This document shows, one piece after another, positions 20,441 to 49,700 of a DNA stretch of 64,000 bases. Numbering within the stretch: position 1 is the first letter of the stretch; each line of letters opens with the position of its first letter. The stretch comes from Oopsacas minuta (taxonomy: Eukaryota > Animalia > Porifera). The notes under the pieces are model-generated. The model searched no databases and had not been told where the DNA came from. It saw only the letters and a program-made list of their open reading frames with translations. The DNA lies in the NCBI GenBank assembly GCA_024704765.1, contig JAKMXF010000088.1:682001-746000 (forward strand), given 5' to 3'. Both the position numbers and the translations under genes were made by a program.

Positions 20441-21502
<1,062 letters not shown>

Positions 21503-32379: not shown

Positions 32380-33615
32380 TCAAGTCTGTTTCTTTGTGCC
32401 CTTTGCCTTTTTGGTGTACTTGTCCTCTGATATCTTGTTCATATAGTATAGAGCTGTCAGAGAGCACAGTACACTATACAATATGGTAATTAGAACTGGA
32501 ACTAATTACAGTAGACCCTTGTTAGCACTGTTCCAATTGCAAAATAGTTAGTTACGATTAGTGGAATGCTTTGATGCATACCAGAGCAAACTCTATAAGC
32601 GGGGAATTCTAGGAAAAAACATATTTCCGCAATGAAGAATTGAATATTTTGGTTTCTCAGAAGAAATTCTTGGAAATTTATATATTATAATAATCAAATA
32701 TCGTGAAGGAAGTGGCTATACATATTCTCTGCTTAAAGGACATTCACATTTGAAATTATATATGGGGAGTAAGCAGGAGATTCGCCGGCTCGACTTCCCC
32801 ACCTTATAGAAGTTCTGCTGTACTATAGGATATAGCTGGATATTCATAAGAGTTGTAAAAGCGGTGAAAAGACTGCCAACATATCGAATATAGTACAGTT
32901 AACCCCCGTTATATCTAACACGGATATATCCAAATACCCGCTTATACCGAAGTGTGAATTGTACAAATATGGCCTCTTCGAATTAACGAGGGTCTACTGA
33001 TGAAACTTACCAAACAGTCATTGACACCCTGTGTACCAAAACTGAAGCAAATGCTGCTAATCCAATTGAGAATACAACTAAATACAAGATTAAATATAAT
33101 TGGAACTATGATGTGTTAGTTCCATATTCACCTTCATATACGTGAGACTGGAATTCATCTCCTAACATCATTCGCTCAATCGAATTTATACCCTTGAAAT
33201 AATAAAATAATTATTTGTATGGGAAATCATATTTTGGACCATGGACTACAAAGTTATTTCTTAAATCATATCGGAGGGTGCAGATAATGACTCCCATGGG
33301 TGCTTGGACCTAGACCAAGAAGTCCATTTCTGGAACTATAATTTACACGAAGTTACAGGTCTCTATGAATATATAATTTCTCATTGTCGTTATCTCGTTG
33401 AACAACTCTTCAAAAATATTTGTTTACAATATATATGATAAACAAACAAGTAAACAACTTACTGTTAGAACAAACACGAAAATATGAGATCCGATAAACC
33501 CAGCTATTAAGGTCATGGGTTGACTAGAAGCAAGTTGTTTGGAGAACATTTGCATTCCTGCGTATATCAGTATGGTTGTCAAGGTACACAACACTAATGT
33601 ACGTATGTTGTTCAT
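32380..33615 (-). CDS. KRTCAP2: Keratinocyte-associated protein 2 (OST-A complex subunit KCP2), 4 exons
   Basis: LIYAGMQMFSKQLASS..GFIGS.IFVFVLT, then GINSIERMMLG.EFQ, LAAFASVLVHRVS.T and LYYMNKIS match KRTCAP2. Confidence 0.9.
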
Positions 33616-33760
33616 TCCTAAAAGACTGGTTGGTAACTAGGCTAGAGGTGTAATAATATCTAAAAATATTGATGGATAATTTGACAAATAATCATTCATA
33701 ACTTACCGATTTTTGGATTCTTATTTCTAAAAGTAGCTACAATTAAATATATTTTGAACC

Positions 33761-36700
33761 ATGGATTACCATTTAAATTATCAACCAATTAGAATGCAGA
33801 GTTCGCATAGCAACGAAGATTTCCCTGAACTATGTATAGTTGGTTCCAGTTCAATATTGTACCAAGATGAAATGAAATACCTGGAATTTGAGCAAGGTCT
33901 CCATTTGATACCATGGATGGGTAACACCTCACTTTTAGTGGACAGATACGACGCGCGCGGTTTTCTCGACAATCAATCAAAATTCGGTTTGAAATCTAAT
34001 TTGAAATTCCGACCAAGTCAAGAGGAAATTGAACTTGAACAAAGGTGTGATGAAGAGCGGTATTTGGAACTAAATATGGAACTAAGTGAGATGGAAATTG
34101 GAACTGAAGAAGAGGAAAAAAGGAATTCAAGAATTTTTGCCCAAATTCCCTTCAACTATGAAACTGAAAAACGTACTGGAATCAATTATGAGAACCCTAG
34201 CAACGAAAAGGTGAGTTGGAATTTAGGCTTTGGTGCATATTTTTGAGGCAAGATTGAAGACAATACCTTGGATACAGAATTCAGCTGAGGAATGTGAGAT
34301 ATATAAGGTATTTGTTCAGGTTTTGTTATCAAAAAGTGAGTAACTTTCTTTCAAAAATTTTGATATTTTGATGTATATATTTTGTTTACTTGTTTACCTT
34401 GTTATTATAATTTCTAATTATTTAGTGTAACACCAAACAAGCAATGGAATATAAATAAATTCACACATTCTCTGTTCTTAAATATTCTTATTTATCTTCT
34501 AGAGACAAACAACTGTTGACAAACCTCTCAATGAAATTACAGACTTCACCCCATACATTCCTAAGCCAGAATTGCAAATTCCTGTAACTATGACAACGCC
34601 AGGAACAGAGAGAATGCATAATATAATAGTCAAAACGGCGCGTCATGTGGCAGAGAAAGGGAACCAACTGGAAATTGTTATTAAAATAAAACAACAATAC
34701 AATTCATCATTCGATTTTCTCAGTTTCGATCATTTTCTACATCCTTATTACAAACACATTAAAAACCTTGTGTTAAGTGGTTTTAAGTCACTTTTTGAGA
34801 CACAATTTGATGACAAGAATTCTACAGAAGGTTTGTATAATTGTACCACCTTTAACACCTATTGCTATGGGGCATTTCTGCACCCTCCCCTTGATAACAC
34901 GAATCAATTAAATCAAAAATATTCTAATAAAGTTATTACATAATAAGTTATACTTGTAGTTCCAGTTATACTTATAGTTCCAGTTATACTTATAGTTCTG
35001 GTTTGACAGGTGGCCTAGGCTCATCCGTTTTAAGCGGGAATTCCTTGCAAATAACTTCTCTATAAATTAGTTCCATATTGGAAGGAGATGGTTCCTGTTT
35101 GACAACATTTGTTGATTCGAGTTTCATAAACTGAATTTCTTTTGTCAGAATTGGAACCTCGCTTTTTTTTGGTTCTGGTTTGGATTTTGGATGTGTTGTT
35201 GAAGATTCAAGTGGAGAATCTGATTGGTCATCTTGTGTAGTAGGATTGTCCCAATCAATAGTATTATTGTTATTTACTTGAAGGTGTTTGTTAGGAATTT
35301 CTAATTTTAGAGAAAAGAAAGCTGCTTGAGAACAGTAGCCAACTTCCTCAAATCCTATTGGTGGTTCCCCAGCGCCATTATACTCCACTTGGTATGGAAA
35401 ATTGTGGCAGATGGCCTCGCACCAATTCATGAACTCTTCTCTGTTCCATTCGAACTTGTGGTCAGGGTGACGAAACCCAGAAAAGTCCTTGAAAAGAATA
35501 TTGAATTCTGAGTTCGGAGTTGTTATGAACACATATTTAGGCCTCAAGGTGCCAAAAATGGCAGTTGGCAATTGTGTCAATGTGTCCTCTTCTAGATGTT
35601 CTATCACCTCTATAAGCGACACAAATTCAACACCTTCTAGCCTCGGATCCCATTGAGTAAGAGAGCCACAATATAACCCAATTTTAAGGGGGGTAGCACG
35701 ATCAATATTGTGGACAGCTTTATGTGGTTTAGCCACATTTTGACACCTTTTGAGGGTGGGTTTATCAATATCAACACCTAATATTTCATGTAAATACGAG
35801 AAATTCTTTTCCCTTAAATGCCAAATAAATTTCCCCTCGGCACAGCCAAAATCCACCAATTTAAAAGGTGTGAACTTTTCTATATATTTAATCGCTAGAA
35901 AATATCTTTGTCTGAATAAAACAGGTCTGAAAATAACTCCAAACGAACTGTCCTCTCTTGTGCTCGCCTCTTTGAGAGATAAATTTTCTGTTACATTCTC
36001 TTGCGTTGCCATGGTAACGATGGTATTAGCCAATTTAGAAGCTAATTTTAGAAGATATAGATTCGTTATAAGCAACTTTACCCAAAGTGTGAAGTATTTA
36101 ATATTAATTCGGACGCCTAGGTACGAGGATAGGGTTCATTTGACCTCAGGACACGCCCCTGGGGTGAGGTGGGCAAATACCTAACCCCAGGACAACAATA
36201 AAACCTCTCAAACATAAATGACAACAAACAATACGGATAGTATCCATATTCAAGTAAATACATAGTAATACACTGGATATTGAATTGCATGCATTTATAT
36301 GCGAGTATGTGTATTACACATTGAATGTCAGTATAAGCAATTACATTCACTAAAACGTATAATGTTACTATGGCAACTCAATCGGACGATAAGAATTCAA
36401 CTTGTCAGCAAGCAGAAGATCCGAATGAAGTTAGGTCAAAGTTCCCAGAGCTGAATTTCCCAAATCATCGACCAGTAACTGATGATATACATTTTAATCC
36501 ACCTCTATACAAGCAGAGATACTCGCTAGGAATCGATTATGTCAAAAAATTCTGTCCTTCAAAAGTGGTTGATTTCGGATGTTCGGAGTGTAAATTTATG
36601 TGGGCAATACGGAACCAGAACTATGAATTTATCCGTGAGATTATTGGTGTCGATATTGATAAAGTTGTCCTAGAGACACACGATTGTGTCGCGAAGCCTG

Positions 36701-39700
36701 TCACGAGTGAATATTTGTTCAAACGTGCTACCCCCCTTAAAATTGGGTTATATTGTGGCTCTCTTACTCAATGGGATCCGAGGCTAGAAGGTGTTGAATT
36801 TGTGTCGCTTATAGAGGTGATAGAACATCTAGAAGAGGACACATTGACACAATTGCCAACTGCCATTTTTGGCACCTTGAGGCCTAAATATGTGTTCATA
36901 ACAACTCCGAACTCAGAATTCAATATTCTTTTCAAGAACTTTTCTGGGTTTCGTCACCCTGACCACAAGTTCGAATGGAACAGAGAAGAGTTCATGAATT
37001 GGTGCGAGGCCATCTGCCACAATTTTCCATACCAAGTGGAGTATAATGGCGCTGGGGAACCACCAATAGGATTTGAGGATGTTGGCTACTGTTCTCAAGC
37101 AGCTTTCTTTTCTCTAAAATTAGAAATTCCTAACAAACACCTTCAAGTAAATAACAACAATACTATTGATTGGGACAATCCTACTACACAAGATGACCAA
37201 TCAGATGCACCAATTGATGAACCAAGAGAATCAATATTTTCTCATTTGAAACTGGAACTAACGAATACTGAAGAGACACCAAATATTGAGACCGATATGG
37301 ATACAAACAACACCTCAGTAGAGGCGAATAATCCGAATACGGAACCAAGTAATATCAATACGGAACTAACTGACATCAATATGGAACCAAACTACGTCTA
37401 CAAGGAAATAATATGTAACGAATTTCCACTGCAAGATCCAAACCATACCCCAGAAAGACAGCTGTTACTAGAGTTAGAATATCATGCAATGCAAATAGCT
37501 AAAAATGAATGGAAAAAATTGGAGGAACAAGGTGTTAGAGAGGAGGACGTTTCTCAGCAAATTTATGAGTCCAATGGGACATATTTTGATGCGGGACAGC
37601 CCAAGGGGTATTTGACCTGCTATGTATCAATTTATGGACGGCTTATGTCATATCCACAGATAAAATTTTATGGTACATACGATGATATCGTGAATACGAT
37701 TACAACTCGACAGGATTACAAACTCAATATGGAACTTACTCATTATAAAGTGGAACTAATGGTTGAAGAACCTGGATATTCAGACGAAGTGGATTCAGAC
37801 GAATGTGACAATGACGAGTCAGTAAATAATGAAATTTGGGGGGACACTTTCCAAGAAGTGGTCCAAGAAAGGAACCACGTTAGTGTACCTGAGAGTTGGG
37901 ACGATTAGTCATGGGACACCCAATTAGTTTCTTGAAATTAGAATTGTTATTATTAAGTTATAAACCTACCATAATTTGAATCAATCTATTTTCTATCTAA
38001 TATACTTGCTATACTATTCAAATGTGACAAAATGCATGCCAATGGGAGTAAATTGTCGTCAGGGAAAGGTCGCGTCTCTCATTTCACGTATTCAGACTCT
38101 CAACTGACTTCTGATGATGAAAATAGAAGTGAAACTATGAATAGTTCCCTTGAGGTGGCGAGAGAAAGGAAATTACGTCAGGAGGCAGAGGCACAAAGTG
38201 TCCGGCTAGCGGGACTATTAGAAAAAGCAGTTACACAATTCGATCCACCTCGACACAACAACGACGCACAACACCAAATTATTAATGATTTGTCCGCCAA
38301 AGCAAATCAAATCGAGCAACACCTCCAAAATCTCCAAAATCGGAAAAATCCAAGTCACTTAATTTCCCCCAAAAAGGATGACAATAGGCATATTCAGGCA
38401 ACCAATGAAATTGAAGACAGGGTTATGGACTTAGAACAACAGCTGGAACGAATTGAAGAGGGGGCCAATCAAATCGCTGGCAACAACAGGCTTACACCCA
38501 AGAGATGGTCGTCACAAATGAGTTTAGATTCAGCAATGCGGAAAGTGGATTCAGGGCGACACAATTTGACACCTGATAAGGAAAATGGTAGGGTGGCAGG
38601 CTTGGAAATTGAACTCGAAACAACTCAACGAATGAAAGAGGATTTGAGAAATCAATTAGAACAAATGTTACGTTACGCCAAATCTTTGGAAACTGAATTA
38701 CGGACTAATAAATCCGATTTTGATAAATTGAGTTCTGACAGCGAACAATGCCAAATAGATCTGTCCATTGAAAGGCAAAAACTAGCTGAGGCAACTGCAC
38801 TTCTTAACCAGGTAAAAAATAATGCACATCGAATAAATTCGTACTCCAAAAGATTGGAAAATAAACTTTTAAGATCTCAAAACCAAATCCAAAAGTACGA
38901 GTTTGATAACGAAAAAAATTTCCGTGAAAATGGTAAAATGCGTGCAGAATTTGAGCGAAGACAATCGGAGAAAGATTTGAATATTCAGAAAGTTTTTAGC
39001 GATATATCGAGAGAAAATTCTGATTTAAAATACCAATTGGAAGATGAGAGGTCAAAATTACGATCATTGAGAGGGATCCAAGCAGAAATGGGAAATAAAT
39101 TCAGGCGTGAGATGGCACAACTCTCTGACACAAAAGAATTACTTATTCGTGAGAAAAACAGTTTTGAAAAGATGAATGAAGAATCAGGAAATCATTTGCA
39201 AGAAATTGAGGTAATGCAGGAAATAATAAACAAACAAACTATGGAGATTGACCAATTAAAAGATGACAATAAAGCCGTATTGCGGGCAACAGGAAGTGAG
39301 ATTGATATGTTGATGGATAGTTTCAGTTCCAAACACCAAATACCTCAATTTACAAGTGGTACAGTGCGGGGGTTGGAGAATGAACCACGTAGATGGATTG
39401 CAGATGTTTTAGCCAAGTTAAAATGGCTACAATCAGAAATGAGGACCACTTACAAATGCGACACATTTAACACCCCACAACACGAGTATTAAATAATATT
39501 ATATACACTGATACATTCCCATTAAATATTATATTAACATATTTTGAACTTTTTAGAATATCCACCCGCTCATACAAAGCCTCCACCGGTGTATCCAGGG
39601 CATATCCCGCCCCATGATGTATCTGCACTTAATATTCCTCAACTGATATCTGGTAATCAGGAACTTAATCTTATTCCATCTGGAACTAACTTGAATGGTG

Positions 39701-42700
39701 AGAAATGCCTGGAAATTTTGCCATATAAAGTATGGGAAAATTCATATTTATTCTATTTTTAGAACAAACAGCTGTTATTTCTAGTTCCAGTGAGGAGACA
39801 GAACTTCATCCTATCCTCAGAACAGGCGCCAGTTCTAAATTTACACCTATACCTAAACTCAAGGCAAAGAGGCGACAAAAAGCAAAGATATTTTTAGAAA
39901 AAATAAAAGGCGAATGTAAACCCGAAACAGCTGATTTTACGCGGGAAACCAATCAAATAGGCGGGAATGAAGTATATTATCAGGTCCTATTTTTAGCAAC
40001 ATATACACGAGCCATATTAGGGCTTAGCCAATCTGTGCCGACCATTGTACATTCACTTAATTACAGTGGCACTATTAATTGGAGGCACTAAGTATGAGTA
40101 TTGATAATATTTCAATGAGAAAGTAAAACTGGCTCAAATGTGTCGTTAGAATAGTTTTGGTATACACATATGTACCTTAGACTGTAACAGTCTATCTATC
40201 TGGAAAATTTCAGAATTCTAGGTATAAGAGTGTGACCAGGACACCGTCGATGGAGAAATAGGCAACAGTTCTAGAAATGTGCTAACTACAGTATTGTATA
40301 GTCCGCACAGTAAAAAGCATAAATATCTGTTTGCTTTGACCAACATACAAATGAGTGTGTGTTAGTCCAGTGACAAACAAAATTTGTGCGCATTTTGAAT
40401 AGCAACTCGAATGTTACAAGAACTATCTTCGATAACGCATAAGTTCACACCAAAATTCCTCAAACGAAATTAAAATTTTCATTCGAATTTTGTGGGTGAA
40501 TAATATGTGTTTATTAACCAATGGGTTTACAGGGATATGATGGATATATTCATATTACACCTCCACCTCCAGACATGCAACAGCTGATCGATAAAGTGGC
40601 ATTTCAAGTGGTATCATGCACAAATGAAAACATTGAGAAACAATTAAAAGAAGGAACAAATTCCATTTATGATTTTCTGTATCCTAGCAACCAATACTAT
40701 GAGTATTATCGTATAAAGAAAAGGCAATTCAAAGACAGTATTAAACCGATACAAAAGGTTGTGTGCTATTTTTAGAATTATCTAGAGTTTGTTATTTAAT
40801 TAATTTTAGAAAGATGAGAGAGTTGATTCTAATAAGAAACTGATTTCATTTTCCATTCAAAGCTCAATTGATAATATGCAACTGGAACAAAAGGTGTATC
40901 TTGGTGGCAATTCAAGTTCCAGTGAAGATGAAAGTCAAAACCAGAAATCTCAGGTACAACATTTATCCCACTTACCCTTAGGGTGTATAGAGATGCATCA
41001 TGGAAGATATAGACATCCGTCCGTTCGCAGTGTCCTGAGACATATACGAGACCGATTGACATCAAAATTACACATTTTTGAGGTAAAGGTCTACACCTCG
41101 GTATGAATTCTTTGTAAAGTGAATAATTTCACACCTTTGGGGTGGTTAAGTTAGGCCAATCAGTTGTAAAACACTTCCATTCTATTGTTTCTATTGAATT
41201 TGTGCTGGACACTTTTAGATATTTTATTTCTTAAAATAGACACTCAGCAAGAAAGTAGGTGTCAAAATGGAGCTTGAAGGTTTGTTAACATAAGTATGAA
41301 ATTAACAACAAGTATTTATAAAAAGATAGTTCATATTTTCACACCTTTTTCATAGAATATAGTTTGTAAGCAAATCTAAAATATGCAACAAATCATAAAG
41401 TAATATGAAACCAACAAATAGGTTCAGTTAAATAATAATTCTGTGTTACAATAATCTATTCTATCAATTGCAAATAATTGTATGGAAAATGACAACAAAA
41501 GCAAAAGTACTTCAAAAACGTGAAAGGGGGAAGAAATTCCTTTCATACATTCTGTCACGCACGAGTGACACTAGTCATGACCTGCCAATTGATCCAAACG
41601 AGGTCGAAACGTCAGACCGTGATAACTTAGGAAGAGCCATGAGTGTACCAATATTATCAATCGAAACCAAACGAAAGTTATCTGAGTCTAAATTGACTCA
41701 ATCCTTATCAAAATATGATTTAAACCCCGGGTCTGATTCGGAAAATGATCTGGACTTGGTGTCAATGAGTGGAGAAGCGAATTACATTGATTTGAATTCT
41801 ATACAAGACAAAGTCTTCAAGAGATCAATGCATATAACGAAGGCTATAGTTAAGAAATCTAAATGGGAGATCAGGGAATTCTCCGATTCAATTAAATTCC
41901 CTGAATTCGATGAGGATATAGTTTCAATTCCAAGTGAAGAAAATGTTAACTGTGATATCACAATGTCTGAAGAGACTACACAACTCGTTAGACGTAGGAT
42001 AAGAACTTCCGTTTCATTGACACGACCCTCAAAAATTCCTCCCCTCCCGAAGAGTGCTACTCAAAAAGACCGAAATCGAGTACGAATTATCCAAGAAATC
42101 ATTAATACTGAAATAGACTATATGAAGTGTCTTAGAAAACTAATACAACTTCGTGACACTATTCTAGCGAATGTGGCAATATATGGGCTCACAGAGGAAC
42201 AGGTTAATAGGATATTTGCATTCCTTCCTGATATCCTTGAGAGTCATGAACTATTCTATATGTCGATTAGTGGAAAAGTTCTACAAATATCACAGGATTT
42301 TGACATTAGAAATTTACAACTTGGACCTGATTGTATTTCTGCATTTTCTAAAGAGATTGTTGCTATTTCCTACTCAAAATATTCAGCACAGTTTTCATCA
42401 ACTATTGACACTATTATTCAGCATAAACTATCAAATGAACAGTTTTCGATTTGTCTCAGAAAATTCGAAGCTGAATCGAAGGAGAGTTTGAAAACGGCAC
42501 TGATAAGACCCATTCAAATATTTCCAAAATACGTACACATAATCTCTGAGCTTTTGAGATTCACTGATCCATCCCATCCGGACTACTGCTCGCTGTCTTA
42601 CGCACTGACAGGCCTGGAGAGTATGGCGATACGGTTAGGCGTCGTTCGTCACGAAGCAGAGCTAAAGGAACAGTTCTTACAACTACAATCTCGGATAATA

Positions 42701-45700
42701 TCAATCAGGAAAGATTTTTTCCGTTCCCAATCTCGGAAACTTTTAAGAATAGAACCCGCAATTAAACTATCACGGAAAGACGGTTATCTCAAGCCGAAAT
42801 TCCGTTATCTGTTCATATTTAACGATCATATTATGTGTCTACGGGGTGCTAAACGGACGTTCACGACAGATATGCTTACCCCGGGACCAGACGACTGTAC
42901 GACACTTTTAAGTCAATATTTTATCGAATGGTCTATACCCATCGATTCTATAGAAGTTAAAGTTAGAGAGAAATCCGAGAATCTAAGGATATTTAGAGAG
43001 ATTACGAAGATATTAAATGAAGAGCAGACACAGAAAAGACACGACGTCAATCTCCTACAAAAAATAGATTTACTTGTCACACAGTTATATGGTGTCTACC
43101 TCGGGTTTTCCAAGGCAAATGTCCAGAATTGTATCGCTCAATTGACACGTGAATTGCGGACAGATGAGATATACACTTCGCTACAGAGGTCACATGCTAT
43201 TGATGTTGAATTGATACGTGGTTCTAGGATCAAGCGTTACATATTTTACTTGGGAACCATAGAAACGATTAAGGAATTCGTACTAACATTCCATTACGCA
43301 AAAATGCGAGTTTTGCCTGAAAATTTTCAAGGTTGGTTGACTTTCGCAGTTGATTCGGATCATAAATTAAAATCTATCCAGAACTTCCCACTATTGGCAG
43401 ACACACAGGTGTACAACACAATGTATGCTAATTGTAGTGTGAACTGTGCAACGATTGTAGCAGATAGCTTCATATGGCTTTGCTGTGGTAATCTCAGACT
43501 TGGCATTATAATGATACTTAACACTTCGGGAAAATATATTGAAAAAATTGTGCAGTCGAAAGCATGTACTGAACGAATCTCAGTGATTCAATATATGCCC
43601 CCTTTCCAGGACGATAGGACAGAATGGATGTACCCTACGGTGTGGATGGGTACAGAAAACGGGACCCTATATGTATACGACGCTTCAGACCCTACTGTGA
43701 TAGACCTTAATGTCGAAACGGAGTGTCCCGATTCAGTTGTGTCAATGATATCTTTCGACGGTAGAATGTTCATTGGATTAGCTAATGGTGATTTAATGGT
43801 GTTTGATACAGATTCGAATGGTGAATGGGATGGCATATGTAGATGTAAATCACACCTTTCTGAGTATAGTATCATATCTATGCACTTGATCGATTCACAA
43901 CTTTGGTGTTTCAGTGGTAATAATGCGATATTATTCTCGCTCGTTGATTTACAAATTGAGGAAATTGTGTCCATCAATAACGAGCCGAATCAACATGTGA
44001 TGCTGACTGCTCCTTTTGGTCGTGCGATTTGGCTGTGTCTTAAACAGGAACCAGAACTATTATTGTTCCATATTAAGCATAAAGAAGTGCTGCAAACGAT
44101 TAGCCTAAATCGCTTTTTCAGACAACTGCGTAAAGAAGATTGGATAGGGACTGAGACAGTGAGGATAACTTCGTTATTGGCGACGCACGGGTCCCTCTGG
44201 GTTGGCACGTCAGAGGGAATTGTAGTTAATTATGAGTTACATGACGGCATCCCTGTATTCGTAGGACAGACCTCTATCTCCCAGGATTCCCACAACGAAA
44301 CTGCCAAACAGTTTCTGTATTTGAGTAAGAATATTGGTCAGAGGCAAACTCCGAAATATCAAAAGCCGAAACAACATAGTGAATTGCTGGAATTGGAAGA
44401 TGGGTATTGGACACAGCTACAACCTATGGAACCAAGCTCAAAGAGAACTTCGATAAACTCAACATTTGAGGCATCAAATATCTTACTAGATGGTAATCTG
44501 AAACTAACACGAGTTGGTTCCGATCCTGTGCAAAAAGATGAACCAATTTTACACGACTTTACTTCTCCACTCAACACGAAAAGATCGATTTCCCAAATAA
44601 ACTCATTTCCCCCCAAAAAATTCGAATTTCCAAAGAAGAGCGATCCATCCATCTACGATAATACATTTAAACCTAGTGAGGAGACAATCCATGAACAGAG
44701 TTTTGAGGACTCCGCGACATATGAACTGATACCAGCCCACCTTAATATGCCCCTCGAAAGACAGATTTCATCGTTTTCAGTGTCCTCTACTGAAGAACAA
44801 GGACCTAAATTTATACCTGGTGGCATGCCGCCACCCAAACCACCTCGTAAATCCTTTTCTGTTGGTAGCCTAACCGAGGCTGATATTGAAACTGGAACCA
44901 TACCTGAAACTACTGAAATAGAAGGGCCGAAAAAATCTAAAATTAGAACTGAGAATTCTTCTGACCTTGAAGTTCTACCTAGACAAATATCGACAGAATA
45001 CAGTCAATCCTCTCTTGAAGGTTCTAGCTCCCCCGTAACTGAAACTGAAACTAAACCCACAGTTCCTAATCCAGGTTCAAAATCTGTTCGTTACGTAAAA
45101 GCAACTTTTCTAAAGCCAATTAATAAAACTAAATTGGAACCATTAAGTTCTGTACCGGAACCAAACACAATAGACCTCTTAGACCCAGCGAATACAGAGA
45201 GAATATGGAATATGGTGGACGACATCAAAATAGATCCAGAGGAAAATTACCGCGACCCTTACGTCATCATGACGAGCCCACGAAAAGAAACTGGAACTAA
45301 CTTACCAGAACCTATTTCGCCACCATTTAGTACCAGACAAGAACAAGCAAAAACCGAATCAAATAGCATATCTAATATGACACCAAAAATTGGAGTGGGG
45401 GATTATTCTAAAGTGAAACGCAATATGGAACTAACTGATGATTTTGAACAGGTTCCGGCTATGACACCTCCCACTAAAAACGAATATTTTGTTCTGTCTA
45501 GCAAAGACCACCATTCTGTCACGAATCCTTCAAAACTCTCGAATATTGAATTAGCTAAAGTGTCAAATTCCTTTGCGTATGATTCGTTGCTAGAATCTAG
45601 ATCCCATAATTCTGGCGATTACACAAAACTCCAATCTCATGGAATTATTGACGATATTCCTGACTACGAAAAATTAATCCTAGACAGTAACGGAAGACCT

Positions 45701-46484
45701 ATATCATTGTCTCCCCAAAAGAAAATACCTATAAAACGTGTTAGTTCCGATTCAGAAGCAATTGGTTCCAATAACACAAAAGATAGATTAGGTGAAAGAG
45801 AGAGTGCGTGGATTGATATACATCTAGAAAGCTATTATGTTCTGTCGATTGGAAACGGGTATTTTGACTGGAGGGAGGTCAAAACAAAACCCACAAACGA
45901 AGGAAGCATGAACCCTACAGTGTTATTATGGCAACTGCCATGTTTATATAATGTGTAGAAATTATAACACCTTGTATTTATTGATTATTTAGTTTGCTTA
46001 GTTTAATAAAGAATAATCTTTAATTCGACATTGTTACACGTTTCTTAAACCCAAAAATTCCAAACTTTTGGATAGTCGTAAGGTGTTAACTATCTTATAG
46101 AAAACAGAGGTGATAAAGTTCATAACATTCGTAGAAAGAGAGTTTCAGAATTTATGCAAAAGTTACGTGACAAGAAATCAAAACAACAAACAAACAAACA
46201 ATCAGATATTTATGAACCAGAATACCCGACCGAAGTTGTGGAAAAGAAAATTTACCAAAAGGCTGCTATAAAATATCCTATTAATAACGGTAGATACTAT
46301 TGATTATTCATATTTTCACACCTTTGGGCGGTCTAACAATAGGAATGCGGTGCTAAACATGGGAAACTTAAAATACAAAAACACAAAATATTTTCAAACT
46401 TGTATTTATACTTTTCTAGATCAAGAAAGAAAGTCAGAAGAAAAGCATGAATCTGATTGGGTTACAAAATCTAAAAATAAATGA
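33761..46484 (+). CDS. SFSWAP: Suppressor-of-white-apricot splicing factor, 10 exons, about 620 aa; hosts four genes in introns 34831-39556 and 41280-46100
   Basis: DRY_EERY domain (HLIPWMG..LVDRYDARG), SURP1 (MHNIIVKTARHV..FDFL.FDHFLHPYY), SURP2 (PPPPDMQQLIDK..YEYY), then ISFSI and RRKRVSEFM. Exons 33761-34210, 34248-34307, 34503-34830, 39557-39697, 39763-39983, 40533-40757, 40810-40953, 41240-41279, 46101-46289 and 46420-46484 are phase-compatible. Exon 2 uses a weak GAG acceptor. Confidence 0.85.
34990..36012 (-). CDS. HENMT1: HEN1 small-RNA 2'-O-methyltransferase paralog a (340 aa), intronless, nested
   Basis: VDFGCAEG (SAM motif I), EVIEH, TPNSEFN, FRHPDHKFEW, YCSQAAFF; ATG at 36012 (the ORF track starts upstream at TTG). 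Confidence 0.92.
   Translation of the reverse strand: MATQENVTENLSLKEASTREDSSFGVIFRPVLFRQRYFLAIKYIEKFTPFKLVDFGCAEGKFIWHLREKNFSYLHEILGVDIDKPTLKRCQNVAKPHKAVHNIDRATPLKIGLYCGSLTQWDPRLEGVEFVSLIEVIEHLEEDTLTQLPTAIFGTLRPKYVFITTPNSEFNILFKDFSGFRHPDHKFEWNREEFMNWCEAICHNFPYQVEYNGAGEPPIGFEEVGYCSQAAFFSLKLEIPNKHLQVNNNNTIDWDNPTTQDDQSDSPLESSTTHPKSKPEPKKSEVPILTKEIQFMKLESTNVVKQEPSPSNMELIYREVICKEFPLKTDEPRPPVKPEL
36370..37908 (+). CDS. HENMT1: HEN1 small-RNA 2'-O-methyltransferase paralog b (512 aa), intronless, nested
   Basis: FNPPLYKQRY (FxPP), VDFGCSE, EVIEH, FRHPDHKFEW; long acidic C-terminal region. Confidence 0.94.
   Translation: MATQSDDKNSTCQQAEDPNEVRSKFPELNFPNHRPVTDDIHFNPPLYKQRYSLGIDYVKKFCPSKVVDFGCSECKFMWAIRNQNYEFIREIIGVDIDKVVLETHDCVAKPVTSEYLFKRATPLKIGLYCGSLTQWDPRLEGVEFVSLIEVIEHLEEDTLTQLPTAIFGTLRPKYVFITTPNSEFNILFKNFSGFRHPDHKFEWNREEFMNWCEAICHNFPYQVEYNGAGEPPIGFEDVGYCSQAAFFSLKLEIPNKHLQVNNNNTIDWDNPTTQDDQSDAPIDEPRESIFSHLKLELTNTEETPNIETDMDTNNTSVEANNPNTEPSNINTELTDINMEPNYVYKEIICNEFPLQDPNHTPERQLLLELEYHAMQIAKNEWKKLEEQGVREEDVSQQIYESNGTYFDAGQPKGYLTCYVSIYGRLMSYPQIKFYGTYDDIVNTITTRQDYKLNMELTHYKVELMVEEPGYSDEVDSDECDNDESVNNEIWGDTFQEVVQERNHVSVPESWDD
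38032..39492 (+). CDS. Coiled-coil protein, CEP128-like (short, 486 aa), intronless, nested same-strand
   Basis: Long heptad regions; GLENEPRRWIADVLAKLKWLQSEM resembles the CEP128 C-terminal motif PHRWLAESKTKLQWLCEEL (recalled). Confidence 0.55.
   Translation: MHANGSKLSSGKGRVSHFTYSDSQLTSDDENRSETMNSSLEVARERKLRQEAEAQSVRLAGLLEKAVTQFDPPRHNNDAQHQIINDLSAKANQIEQHLQNLQNRKNPSHLISPKKDDNRHIQATNEIEDRVMDLEQQLERIEEGANQIAGNNRLTPKRWSSQMSLDSAMRKVDSGRHNLTPDKENGRVAGLEIELETTQRMKEDLRNQLEQMLRYAKSLETELRTNKSDFDKLSSDSEQCQIDLSIERQKLAEATALLNQVKNNAHRINSYSKRLENKLLRSQNQIQKYEFDNEKNFRENGKMRAEFERRQSEKDLNIQKVFSDISRENSDLKYQLEDERSKLRSLRGIQAEMGNKFRREMAQLSDTKELLIREKNSFEKMNEESGNHLQEIEVMQEIINKQTMEIDQLKDDNKAVLRATGSEIDMLMDSFSSKHQIPQFTSGTVRGLENEPRRWIADVLAKLKWLQSEMRTTYKCDTFNTPQHEY
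41489..45958 (+). CDS. Rho GEF of the ARHGEF10/10L/17 family (DH-PH-beta-propeller), single 4.5-kb exon, nested same-strand
   Basis: DH domain (RVRIIQEIINTEIDYMKCL..LIRPIQIFPKY..LLRFTDPSHPDY), PH-like region, propeller (PTVWMGTENG; GSLWVGTSEG), terminal GNGYFDWR and LLWQLP; first in-frame ATG at 41489. Confidence 0.88.
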   Translation: MTTKAKVLQKRERGKKFLSYILSRTSDTSHDLPIDPNEVETSDRDNLGRAMSVPILSIETKRKLSESKLTQSLSKYDLNPGSDSENDLDLVSMSGEANYIDLNSIQDKVFKRSMHITKAIVKKSKWEIREFSDSIKFPEFDEDIVSIPSEENVNCDITMSEETTQLVRRRIRTSVSLTRPSKIPPLPKSATQKDRNRVRIIQEIINTEIDYMKCLRKLIQLRDTILANVAIYGLTEEQVNRIFAFLPDILESHELFYMSISGKVLQISQDFDIRNLQLGPDCISAFSKEIVAISYSKYSAQFSSTIDTIIQHKLSNEQFSICLRKFEAESKESLKTALIRPIQIFPKYVHIISELLRFTDPSHPDYCSLSYALTGLESMAIRLGVVRHEAELKEQFLQLQSRIISIRKDFFRSQSRKLLRIEPAIKLSRKDGYLKPKFRYLFIFNDHIMCLRGAKRTFTTDMLTPGPDDCTTLLSQYFIEWSIPIDSIEVKVREKSENLRIFREITKILNEEQTQKRHDVNLLQKIDLLVTQLYGVYLGFSKANVQNCIAQLTRELRTDEIYTSLQRSHAIDVELIRGSRIKRYIFYLGTIETIKEFVLTFHYAKMRVLPENFQGWLTFAVDSDHKLKSIQNFPLLADTQVYNTMYANCSVNCATIVADSFIWLCCGNLRLGIIMILNTSGKYIEKIVQSKACTERISVIQYMPPFQDDRTEWMYPTVWMGTENGTLYVYDASDPTVIDLNVETECPDSVVSMISFDGRMFIGLANGDLMVFDTDSNGEWDGICRCKSHLSEYSIISMHLIDSQLWCFSGNNAILFSLVDLQIEEIVSINNEPNQHVMLTAPFGRAIWLCLKQEPELLLFHIKHKEVLQTISLNRFFRQLRKEDWIGTETVRITSLLATHGSLWVGTSEGIVVNYELHDGIPVFVGQTSISQDSHNETAKQFLYLSKNIGQRQTPKYQKPKQHSELLELEDGYWTQLQPMEPSSKRTSINSTFEASNILLDGNLKLTRVGSDPVQKDEPILHDFTSPLNTKRSISQINSFPPKKFEFPKKSDPSIYDNTFKPSEETIHEQSFEDSATYELIPAHLNMPLERQISSFSVSSTEEQGPKFIPGGMPPPKPPRKSFSVGSLTEADIETGTIPETTEIEGPKKSKIRTENSSDLEVLPRQISTEYSQSSLEGSSSPVTETETKPTVPNPGSKSVRYVKATFLKPINKTKLEPLSSVPEPNTIDLLDPANTERIWNMVDDIKIDPEENYRDPYVIMTSPRKETGTNLPEPISPPFSTRQEQAKTESNSISNMTPKIGVGDYSKVKRNMELTDDFEQVPAMTPPTKNEYFVLSSKDHHSVTNPSKLSNIELAKVSNSFAYDSLLESRSHNSGDYTKLQSHGIIDDIPDYEKLILDSNGRPISLSPQKKIPIKRVSSDSEAIGSNNTKDRLGERESAWIDIHLESYYVLSIGNGYFDWREVKTKPTNEGSMNPTVLLWQLPCLYNV

Positions 46485-46790
46485 ATTCAAACAATCAAAT
46501 TTTACAAGCCAATTCATTAAAATCGGTTTTAACTCTATTTTATGAAAATATTATTTAATTCCTGTTCCGTGGAATTGTGGATAGACTACGGTTCCCAACC
46601 TGCGGTCCACGGAGGACGGCAGGGGGTCCACAAAATTTGTTAAAATTGTATTGAGGGTCGGTTCGTGTTAATCATAAATTCCATTATCGTGCGGACAGAC
46701 GGACAAACAAACGAACGAACGAACGATATATGCCATCCATCAATTGGGACAAATGGTTCCCAACTTTTTTCAGTTATTTTGTAAAAGTTT

Positions 46791-49700
46791 ATGAGTGGAG
46801 CTAAATTGTCCAGACCAGGGTCAACACAAAGTGGCCGGGGAAGTGGATCAGATATTCATGTCAGTTTAAAAGAAAATGAATTCTTCAAATCAGCTGATGA
46901 GGTTCTGTTAAAAAGCAAAGGAAAAACAGCTGGAGATGGACCAATCAGATTATTGGAAGATGTGAGTGCAAAGTATAAATAGAAATTTGTGTTTATTATT
47001 GTTTGTATTTACAGATTCTATTTTTGGACATTTCTCAACAACAGCTGATCGATATTTCACAAGTTTCACTTTGTTTACGACTAAAAATCTGCATTTTTCA
47101 TTCAAATTTCGTTGCTAACCTAGAACCACTTTCAAATGCTCCAAGTTTAAAAATAATCGACGCAAGTTCGAACCGAATTAAACACATTCCTGGAGAATTA
47201 TTTTGGAGTGGATTTACATACCTCGAGGTTTTATATCTCCATGACAACCCGATCGCTAATTTGGAATGTCTAGGCATGTTAACTGGAGCTCCAAAGTTGA
47301 GGATAGTCACATTGTACGATACACCTTTGAGCTTGAATAACAACTATAGGCATGTGGCTGTTAATTCAATGTGGCATTTGGAAGGAATAGATTTTTATTT
47401 GATTTCAGATGAAGAAATTATTCAGGTGAGTTGGCCCTCTGTTGTTAATGATAACTTGTTTCAGCTACACATTATGCCATCTAAGCATGTAGGGGAGCTG
47501 CTAGTTGCTATTTCATTATTTATGACATAATTATAGTGTCGAATTCATGGAAATATTCCAATGACTCTACTTCTAAATGTGTGAATTAATCGTGTTAAAG
47601 GAGGTCTGTTACTACTATTCACCCGTTAGTTAGTAAATATATTGTGTAGTTATTCATGTGACAGGGAAACTTGATGCAGGTGGTGGAGCTGAAACAAGTT
47701 TCCAACTAACAGTAGTCTTAAAATACTAATAAATGGGAAAATTTGGAAATATATAATTTGAGGTTTTCTTACAAAAAGCAGCTGTAATTATAATTAATTA
47801 TTTCCTTTGAATTAACCTCACAACATATTGTATTGTTGCTATGCAGCACCTGATGGAATGTGGTTAACATATCCATGAATGATTTGGTTGCTAGAGTGTG
47901 TAGTGTATGTTAGAGAGATCAGTGACTACCTGTAAGCGTTACAGTCTGTTCTGTGGTGTATCCAGATAGTATAAGAATAGTGACTAGTGTTATCTTACAA
48001 TAAATATTTTGAGTAACATGGCAACTGAATTTGGCGCTGGTATGCATGAAGAGACAGCTAGAGAGTTGGAAAGGCTTAGGAGAGAGGTGTTGATGGCGAA
48101 AGAGGAACTCCGAGCCAGATTTGAGTTCTATTTCCGTGTGCTACAGGAGAAACATCTAGAAATGGAGGTACAACTAGATGAAGTGGTCCGTGTGGCAGAG
48201 GCTAAAGTGGTGGACAGACATAACAAATTGGATCAGCTGCTAATCACACAAGCTGAGGTTACACAAAATTTGGTGCATAATGAGTTGAATGAAACTCTTG
48301 AAATTGTGTCAAGAGAGTTGTACCAGAAAATACAAGTACTGGAGGCGATTGGTGACCGGGTACCATCTGTGTGGCTCGAATGGCATGACGAGTGGTTGGA
48401 AGGTGGCATGGAAGGATTGTGTCGCGTGGTTGAGGGAGTGTCCTACGTGAACAGACACAAACCAGTGTGGTCTGGTGTCAATGAAAGAAGTGGAAGTGAT
48501 GAGATATTCAATCCTATTGATCTCTCAATAGATAGAGATAACGGAGATATTTATGTGTCTGATTATGACGTTCATAGAATTCAGGTGTTCTGTAAAGATG
48601 GCTCTTATAAGAGGACCATTAAGGCACAAGGAATGTCTTGTCCTTCTCGTATAGCTGTAACACCTCATCAGCTGTTTGTTATATGTTTCCTCTCAGATAA
48701 TATCCTCAAGCTGGATAAGGTGTCAGGGGAAATAATGTGTCAAATAGAAACAGATTATTCCATATCCTGTATTACAGCTGAGGTAGATACACTGTATGTA
48801 GGAATATTTAATATTAATCACATATCTCATTACAGTTTGGAGGATTTGAGTTTAATCAAGGAAACAGCACTTAACTCTCCTCACATAACACAAGACACAA
48901 GGCTCAGAGACCTGAGAACAACTCCATCTCTATTCGTAGTCCTGTTTAGGGAGTGTGACTATCTGATACAATTATTTTCAAGAGATGGGAACCTCTTTCA
49001 AGTGATTGCGTTACAGGAATTACTCACTGATCCTAACCGTATCTGTCTAGACAGACACCAGAATATTATAGTTAGTAACTACGGAGCTAATAACATTAAA
49101 GTAATCTCTATAGAGGGACATATTGTAACTACTATTGGACATGAAGGGAAAGGACCTGGAGAATTCTACTATCCTAAGGGCATTGACATTAACGAGGAGG
49201 GTCGAATTGTTGTAGTGGACAGGAAGGATTCTCACAAACTACAATTCTTCTAATTATGTATTTATTTTGTCGTTGAAATGATTATAACTAACAAAACAAA
49301 ATGTTTATTATATTTTCTATTACTTAACACGTAGACACCATTTTAACACATTGTATAACACCTCATAGATTGCAATACAAGTTTGAGATTATAATCTTAT
49401 AGGATTTGGATTTATACGACACACAATTCGCCGCAATGTCAGAATCCTATTTTCTACAACTCTATCAACCCTTTAATCCCGTATGGAGTTATGAAATAGC
49501 AAACAAACACATATCTAATCTCCTAACCGTTGTCAAGAGGAAAATGGCAAAATTATCACCTGTCTTAATTCTTCAAAGGTAATATTTGTTGAAAATAATC
49601 TTTCTGAATGTATTCATTTGAAATATGCTTAAAAGGTGTTAAAATATACATATATGATCTTTAGGCATGTCAGAGGTTGGTTGGTAAGAAAGAATATTCC

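Follow-up and report, generated by a model that had tools for sequence, protein, structure and literature searches.

Four genes very probably nested in two introns of the SFSWAP gene of the glass sponge Oopsacas minuta

Results

Gene content of the locus

This study concerns a window of 64,000 nucleotides (nt) of DNA from the glass sponge Oopsacas minuta (contig JAKMXF010000088.1 of GenBank assembly GCA_024704765.1, positions 682,001 to 746,000) and, within it, the SFSWAP (suppressor-of-white-apricot) gene on the forward strand. The open reading frames (ORFs) of the window were listed and scanned against Pfam, exon borders were derived from the sequence, and the joined frame was computed in a local script in order to follow its phase. 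The resulting SFSWAP model (33794/33761-46484) comprises nine exons and eight introns with GT-AG borders throughout. Its two possible left ends are the first ATG of the ORF at 33761 and the methionine at 33794, the latter being common to all five genomes compared below. Six of the introns are 52-549 nt long, in a species with a mean intron length of 341 bp (PMC10280926). The other two, introns 2 and 7, hold four single-exon genes, here called guests, three of which lie on the SFSWAP strand and one, HEN1a, on the opposite strand (Table 1).

Table 1. Features of the SFSWAP locus of O. minuta (window coordinates) and counterparts of the HEN1 inverted repeat in four related loci (coordinates of those loci). 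A slash within a sequence marks a splice site.
Feature	Position	Strand	Remarks
SFSWAP exon 1, DRY_EERY	33794..34210	+	Pfam DRY_EERY PF09750, E-value 9.8e-23 (ORF 33761-34246); donor AAG/GTGAGT
SFSWAP exon 2, SURP1	34503..34830	+	Pfam Surp PF01805, E-value 1.1e-11 (ORF 34572-34943); donor GAAG/GTTTGT, leaving 1 nt of a split codon; dN/dS 0.11-0.13
SFSWAP intron 2	34831..39556	+	4726 nt, of which 4023 nt (85%) are guest coding sequence (HEN1a, HEN1b, coiled-coil gene)
Guest 1, HEN1a, 340 amino acids	34990..36012	-	Pfam Methyltransf_23; small-RNA 2'-O-methyltransferase paralogue, antisense to SFSWAP; stop 160 nt from host donor
Inverted repeat, left arm	35207..35700		494 nt, 99% identity; in HEN1a
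Guest 2, HEN1b, 512 amino acids	36370..37908	+	HENMT1 homologue with long C-terminal extension
Inverted repeat, right arm	36724..37217		494 nt, 99% identity; in HEN1b
Guest 3, coiled-coil gene, 486 amino acids	38032..39492	+	Starts 124 nt past HEN1b stop; own stop 64 nt before host acceptor
SFSWAP exon 3	39557..39697	+	Acceptor tttttag/, phase 2; dN/dS 0.33 in closest pair
SFSWAP exon 4	39763..39983	+	Basic KAKRRQKAK-FLE-IK motif; dN/dS 0.11-0.25
SFSWAP exon 5, SURP2	40533..40757	+	Pfam Surp PF01805, E-value 1.5e-5 (ORF 40521-40775); aligns to SURP2 of named SFSWAPs
SFSWAP exon 6	40810..40953	+	ISFSI...acidic Ser-rich motif; phase 0 donor; matches crinoid SFSWAP 558-604; kept in L002-L005
SFSWAP micro-exon 7	41240..41279	+	40 nt; brings exon 6 (phase 0) and exon 8 (phase 2) into one frame; acceptor also in GenBank model
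SFSWAP intron 7	41280..46100	+	4821 nt, 93% of it RhoGEF ORF 41468-45958
Guest 4, RhoGEF, 1489 amino acids	41489..45958	+	Pfam RhoGEF PF00621 (2.6e-23), PH_19 PF19057 (1e-8), WD40_2 PF19056 (8.5e-36), in that order; ARHGEF10/17 type
SFSWAP exon 8	46101..46289	+	RRKRVSEFMQKLRDKK motif (RRKR-AEF-QK-..KK); phase 2 acceptor; dN/dS 0.24-0.31; after RhoGEF in all five genomes
SFSWAP exon 9 and stop codon	46420..46484	+	SDWVT motif kept in L004 and L005
L002 repeat arms	8216-8653/10338-10775
L003 repeat arms	9020-9440/10359-10779
L004 repeat arms	8346-8783/10397-10834
L005 repeat arms	8782-9203/10336-10757

The host gene

Joining the nine exons yields a single open frame of 600 codons that ends at 46484, corresponding to a protein of about 590-600 amino acids. 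Across intron 2 (34830/GT...AG/39557) the phases are compatible, with 1 nt before and 2 nt after the intron making up the split codon GAA. Homology searches of the host were run exon by exon and not with the joined protein. A phmmer search of the full library with exon 1 returned SFSWAP proteins as the top named matches, and named SFSWAP proteins carry DRY_EERY, SURP1 and SURP2 in one chain, ordered as in exons 1, 2 and 5. Both SURP modules of the sponge align to SURP1 and SURP2 of a crinoid SFSWAP, their membership in one protein resting on the inferred splice. Further downstream, the motifs of exons 6 and 8 follow SURP2 in the crinoid protein too and in the same order (558-604 and 691-710). 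In many SFSWAPs, a hidden Markov model of exon 8 matches the part of the chain that follows SURP2, its best E-value being 3.4e-6 vs. 0.44 for reversed sequences. The sponge protein is considerably shorter than its bilaterian counterparts (about 600 vs. 850-980 amino acids), and a search of the conceptual exons 6-9 for an arginine/serine (RS)-rich tail gave no RS/SR repeats, this part being rich in Lys, Glu and Ser instead. As judged from its domains, their order and the reading frame, the host is an intact SFSWAP orthologue of O. minuta.

Exon 3 features a second donor at 39652 (G/GTAATCAG), which is in the same phase as the one at 39697 and whose sequence is kept in the other four genomes. 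In fact, two same-phase donors of exon 3 are found in every genome, the upstream one with a conserved G/GTAAYCAR (39652/39697 in the window; 13447 in L002, 13143 in L003, 13434 in L004 and 13395 in L005). This pair may represent an alternative 5' splice site by which about 15 codons are included or left out.

Conservation of the nest in related genomes

The comparison set consisted of O. minuta and four hexactinellid-like loci (L002-L005) from ENA assemblies (ERZ20067936, ERZ25069837, ERZ25766962 and ERZ25072740), i.e., contigs with HEN1b orthologues taken with 10-kb flanks, and thus covered five genomes. The HEN1b orthologues (P0002-P0007) show 55-66% identity. The order and orientation of all elements are identical in the four loci: exon 1, exon 2, HEN1a(-), HEN1b(+), coiled-coil gene(+), exons 3-6, RhoGEF(+) and exon 8. 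As in O. minuta, the coding sequences of both guest blocks lie wholly between SFSWAP exons. In tblastn searches with the single exon peptides, every one of the four gave exons 1-6 and 8 in order, and L004 and L005 gave exon 9 as well. A fifth, metagenomic taxon (L007-L010) covers exons 1-2 only.

For L004-L005, the closest pair, synonymous divergence (dS) amounts to about 0.75, and for the other pairs it is saturated, so all five genomes are well diverged. Exon 1 of O. minuta shares 68-76% identity with its orthologues, at a ratio of nonsynonymous to synonymous substitution (dN/dS) of 0.10-0.17. Per-exon Nei-Gojobori estimates for exons 1-5 and 8 fall between 0.1 and 0.35, reflecting purifying selection also in the exons past the guests; the low ratios indicate that the exons beyond each guest block are translated. 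The splice phases are likewise invariant: in five of five genomes the donor of exon 2 is in phase 1 (leaving 1 nt), the pyrimidine-rich acceptor of exon 3 is in phase 2 (supplying 2 nt), the donor of exon 6 is in phase 0 and the acceptor of exon 8 is in phase 2. The last two phases require an intervening exon with a length of 1 mod 3, a place filled in O. minuta by micro-exon 7.

No methionine is present in exons 3-4 of O. minuta (120 codons), and none is conserved across the genomes in exons 3-4 or at the head of exon 8. Since exons 3, 4 and 8 lack a usable methionine and have conserved acceptors, they must be spliced to upstream coding exons. The two guest-bearing introns of O. minuta have the same donor sequence, GAAG/GTTTGT; it is not conserved in the other genomes and is taken as chance.

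On the basis of conservation, phase and dN/dS in five genomes, the locus is very probably one SFSWAP gene with four guests nested in two introns, three of them on the host strand, as had been proposed in a sequence-only reading of this DNA. The figures of that reading were recomputed and hold: phase-compatible exons on the SURP1 and SURP2 sides flank 34831-39556, the shares of guest coding sequence in the two introns are those of Table 1, and the AATAAA at 46005 lies about 90 nt before the host acceptor.

Outside the sponges, the annotated 57-kb SFSWAP locus of a crinoid contains no called guests. Within this small sample, the nest appears confined to hexactinellid-type genomes. The crinoid gene has an intron after SURP1 about 5-10 residues from the site of sponge intron 2, a match too imprecise to call the two introns homologous.

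Existing annotation and the possibility of a broken gene

In GenBank, SFSWAP is split into three models of 285, 713 and 66 amino acids, the 713-residue model being a chimera of the coiled-coil protein and SURP2. The fusion in this chimera uses a donor, CAC/GT at 39388, which is absent from the other four genomes, and would drop about 30 highly conserved C-terminal residues of the coiled-coil protein; it was rejected. Assigning exon 8 to RhoGEF as a 3' exon was rejected as well, as conservation of RhoGEF extends through its C-terminus to the stop codon of its ORF and the motif of exon 8 belongs to SFSWAP. The same applies to a separate 66-residue gene made of exons 8-9, whose methionine is not conserved and whose conserved coding sequence reaches upstream of that methionine.

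An ATTAAA and an AATAAA (34926) are located in 34907-34943, just before the stop of the read-through frame of exon 2 and 77-96 nt into intron 2.

The GenBank models could in principle be read as gene fission, i.e., an SFSWAP broken into a DRY_EERY and SURP1 gene, a SURP2 part, standing by itself or joined to the coiled-coil gene, and a short gene for the C-terminal end, without any nesting. Apart from the three models themselves, the AATAAA at 34926 by the read-through stop of exon 2 and the lack of a spliced full-length protein in the databases searched would fit this explanation. We consider it very improbable, as exons 3-4 of O. minuta have no methionine and exon 8 has no conserved one, and all three show purifying selection and conserved acceptors in a conserved phase; moreover, the fusion would need the donor at 39388 that the other four genomes do not have and would skip 30 highly conserved residues. 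In addition, the O. minuta annotation lists 83 nested genes vs. 2432 in Aphrocallistes vastus, a gap which the authors of that study lay to the annotation method (PMC10282587). Given the conserved exon structure, the three GenBank models are artefacts that arose because the annotation made no provision for nesting.

Directly downstream of SFSWAP (46791-49253), a gene with an LRR_9 domain (exons from 46791) is followed by a same-strand ORF of 414 amino acids with NHL repeats (48009-49253). The GenBank model of the LRR gene closes at a read-through stop (47530), in the way seen for SFSWAP, and an NHL gene follows the locus in L003 too. This pair may represent a further nest with the same kind of mis-annotation.

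The nested genes and their boundaries

HEN1b matches the structures 4xcx of human HENMT1 (E-value 2.4e-47) and 5wy0 (1.1e-43) and is 69% identical to HEN1a, to which it is arranged divergently across a spacer of 357 nt. For the coiled-coil protein, the sequence-only reading had suggested a likeness to CEP128. The protein of the window has no Pfam match, and in an atlas search its neighbours were generic coiled-coil proteins, CEP128 ranking 13th. The CEP128 profile PF28367 has precomputed matches on the orthologues of L004 and L005 and a faint one on that of L002; a Pfam rerun gave none for the window protein or its orthologues. At 486 amino acids the guest is also far shorter than CEP128 (about 1100 amino acids in the atlas row). 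A CEP128-like identity is thus plausible, with the profile matches of the orthologues in its favour and the missing Pfam match of the window protein against it.

The ends of the guests are well defined. RhoGEF begins with a conserved ATG at 41489, and both its start (MTT...) and its C-terminus up to the stop codon are conserved in five genomes, as is the C-terminus of the coiled-coil protein up to its stop codon. An ATTAAA at 39521 follows the coiled-coil gene, 30 nt before the host acceptor at 39556, and the AATAAA at 46005 follows RhoGEF, 90 nt before the host acceptor; the stop codon of RhoGEF itself is 142 nt before it. In the other genomes, the gap between guest stop and host acceptor ranges from 42 to 283 nt for the coiled-coil gene and from 402 to 983 nt for RhoGEF, vs. 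64 and 142 nt in O. minuta. As these gaps are not conserved, a finely tuned overlap of polyadenylation and splice signals is argued against.

Upstream of the start codons, short non-coding blocks are conserved in five genomes: AACCTCCCATA about 65 nt before the ATG of the coiled-coil gene (37940-37975 in the window), and (T)ATGAAACCAA..ATAGG (ATGAAACC...) about 85 nt before the ATG of RhoGEF (41400-41425 in the window). Both are candidate core-promoter or acceptor elements. An Rfam scan of 33000-47500 gave no match.

In another explanation, some same-strand guests, chiefly the coiled-coil gene, would lack promoters of their own and be released from a longer precursor, either the host pre-mRNA or a dicistronic transcript shared by the coiled-coil gene and HEN1b, through trans-splicing of a spliced leader that is coupled to polyadenylation upstream. 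Such operon-like processing would agree with the trans-spliced leader reported in A. vastus (PMC10282587), with the absence of both AATAAA and ATTAAA from the spacer that separates the coiled-coil gene from HEN1b, and with a pyrimidine-rich ...AG, followed by AACCTCCCATA, which in four of the five genomes stands about 65-75 nt ahead of the ATG of the coiled-coil gene. However, no acceptor adjoins the ATG of HEN1b or RhoGEF, the conserved upstream blocks read equally well as core-promoter elements, and no more than about 4% of the long reads of A. vastus carried the leader (PMC10282587). Altogether, this explanation is unlikely.

An inverted repeat between the two HEN1 genes

HEN1a and HEN1b contain the two arms of a long, nearly perfect inverted repeat, and each of the four other loci has a counterpart of 421-438 nt with 92-99% identity between the arms (Table 1). 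In a codon alignment, the two paralogues within a genome are 97-100% identical over the same ~135 codons, with a sharp 5' boundary shared between the genomes. Outside the repeat the paralogues fall to 40-68% identity, and inside it the orthologues of different genomes reach 70-88%. This pattern of identity is one of concerted evolution, evidently maintained independently in five lineages, and its occurrence inside an intron is the least expected element of the locus. Gene conversion bounded by diverged flanks would explain the repeat; selection for a hairpin in read-through transcripts is a more exotic alternative.

Taken to its end, this alternative would make the guest-bearing SFSWAP introns a conserved regulatory module, namely a self-limiting small-RNA circuit gated by a splicing factor. 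Here, the level of SFSWAP would set, via intron retention, how far the polymerase reads through intron 2; only read-through transcripts of the (+) strand would hold both repeat arms and form a long hairpin RNA, and this hairpin could give rise to small RNAs against HEN1, i.e., against the enzymes that stabilise small RNAs. We regard such a circuit as very doubtful.

A short repeat of another kind is the 15-mer TTTCACACCTTTGGG, with six copies in the window (at most two mismatches) vs. 0.12 expected. Two exact copies on the host strand (41127-41141 and 46314-46328) are situated about 105-112 nt upstream of SFSWAP acceptors, in introns 6 and 8, and the others at 21360, 7499, 15803 and 5401; the orthologous loci L002-L005 contain none. 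The 15-mer may be a short dispersed repeat.

Discussion

How host and guests may be expressed

Going beyond the structure of the nest, we think it likely that the host is transcribed through its guests, that the guests have their own promoters and polyadenylation sites, and that the locus is an instance of genome-wide nesting. The host pre-mRNA would run through HEN1a in antisense and through HEN1b, the coiled-coil gene and RhoGEF in sense, and would be spliced at 34830^39557 and 41279^46101. The guests, in turn, would be expressed from intronic promoters, e.g., a bidirectional one in the spacer between HEN1a and HEN1b and others at the motifs about 65-85 nt upstream of the ATGs of the coiled-coil gene and RhoGEF, and would end at their own polyadenylation sites 64-142 nt before the host acceptors. 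With three same-sense 3' ends inside the host, host expression needs read-through of three 3'-end signals. Mutual transcriptional interference between host and guests would therefore be likely.

Several observations weigh against this account. On the side of the host, the weakest part of the model is micro-exon 7. Its homologous candidates in L004 and L005 are likewise 40 nt long, and the candidates in L002 and L003 measure 49 and 64 nt, but the sequence is poorly conserved, and by chance alone candidates of this kind are no rarity. Moreover, the libraries searched yielded no spliced hexactinellid SFSWAP protein, only genomic ORF fragments: phmmer with exon 1 against the full library found one close match, a genomic ORF of 158 amino acids, and exon 2 recovered four ORFs of genomic origin in a word search. 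As this word search is blind to proteins more than 1.75 times the length of the query, its blank says little. The contigs of these matches are metagenomic DNA that retains intron 1. Intronic polyadenylation near 34926 could also yield the truncated DRY_EERY and SURP1 product of 285 amino acids that GenBank shows. On the side of the guests, the 124 nt between HEN1b and the coiled-coil gene contain no AATAAA or ATTAAA, which weakens the case for independent transcription of every guest.

A more specific proposal is that host and guests are coupled in regulation, the level of SFSWAP deciding whether the guest-bearing introns are spliced or transcripts end at the guest polyadenylation sites. This is compatible with the nested structure and goes beyond it. 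SFSWAP favours the retention of introns, with reported autoregulation of its own first two retained introns (PMC12017769); the sequence-only reading, too, had named autoregulation of SWAP proteins through intron retention. Guest-bearing intron 2 is among the first two introns of the host. The closeness of the guest stops to the acceptors (64 and 142 nt, with ATTAAA at 39521 and AATAAA at 46005) would suit such a switch, and in human, nested genes provoke intron retention and cryptic polyadenylation in their hosts (PMC3192792). Yet nothing ties the nest to the function of SFSWAP in a lineage where 12.4% of A. vastus genes are nested, the distances between stop and acceptor vary widely between the genomes (42-283 and 402-983 nt elsewhere), and the sponge SFSWAP is devoid of an RS-rich tail. 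We therefore hold this coupling to be improbable. The nest is best taken as an example of the gene nesting found throughout the compact genomes of glass sponges, with nothing that marks a device specific to SFSWAP.

Comparison with known systems

Glass sponges are rich in nested genes, which are frequently conserved and in A. vastus make up 12.4% of all genes (Francis et al., 2023; PMC10282587). The nests described there for A. vastus and O. minuta, e.g., the glassin locus, resemble the SFSWAP locus in their single-exon guests within introns, the compact genome, the conservation between hexactinellids and an O. minuta annotation that mis-merges or splits the hosts. What sets the SFSWAP locus apart is that two introns of one host carry four guests, three of which share the host strand, with spacers of 64-357 nt; the study neither names SFSWAP as a host nor discusses strand. 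That same-strand nesting is rare, as the sequence-only reading had put it, is overstated: in human such genes are a minority of the nested ones, yet amount to about 37% (PMC3192792).

With Drosophila su(w[a]) and human SFSWAP and their autoregulated introns (Zachar et al., 1987, 1994, cited in PMC12017769), the sponge gene shares DRY_EERY, the two SURPs, the best named matches and the position of one guest intron among the first two. In contrast, its protein has only about 600 amino acids and no RS-rich tail, and the intron match is approximate and to the crinoid gene. Interference between host and nested genes was described in human (Kaer et al., 2011; PMC3192792) for guests that are likewise intronic and often single-exon coding genes, and retention, exonization and premature polyadenylation would be expected here as well. 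Human introns are, however, large and their guests a small part of them, whereas the sponge guests take up 85-93% of the intron, their ends lying 64-142 nt from the acceptor. Spliced-leader operons of nematodes, tunicates and ctenophores also have co-oriented genes with very short spacers, and a trans-spliced leader has been reported in the sponge lineage; unlike in those operons, no acceptor adjoins the start codons of HEN1b and RhoGEF, and the unit would sit inside an intron of another gene.

While nesting itself is already documented genome-wide in glass sponges, the SFSWAP nest adds a new case of unusual density and deep conservation. For O. minuta, it corrects the annotation, in that one intact SFSWAP replaces three models, one of them chimeric with an unrelated coiled-coil gene. 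In a wider sense, the locus is a tractable case for how a compact animal genome reconciles read-through of the host with polyadenylation of the guests, and for whether spliced-leader trans-splicing has a role in this.

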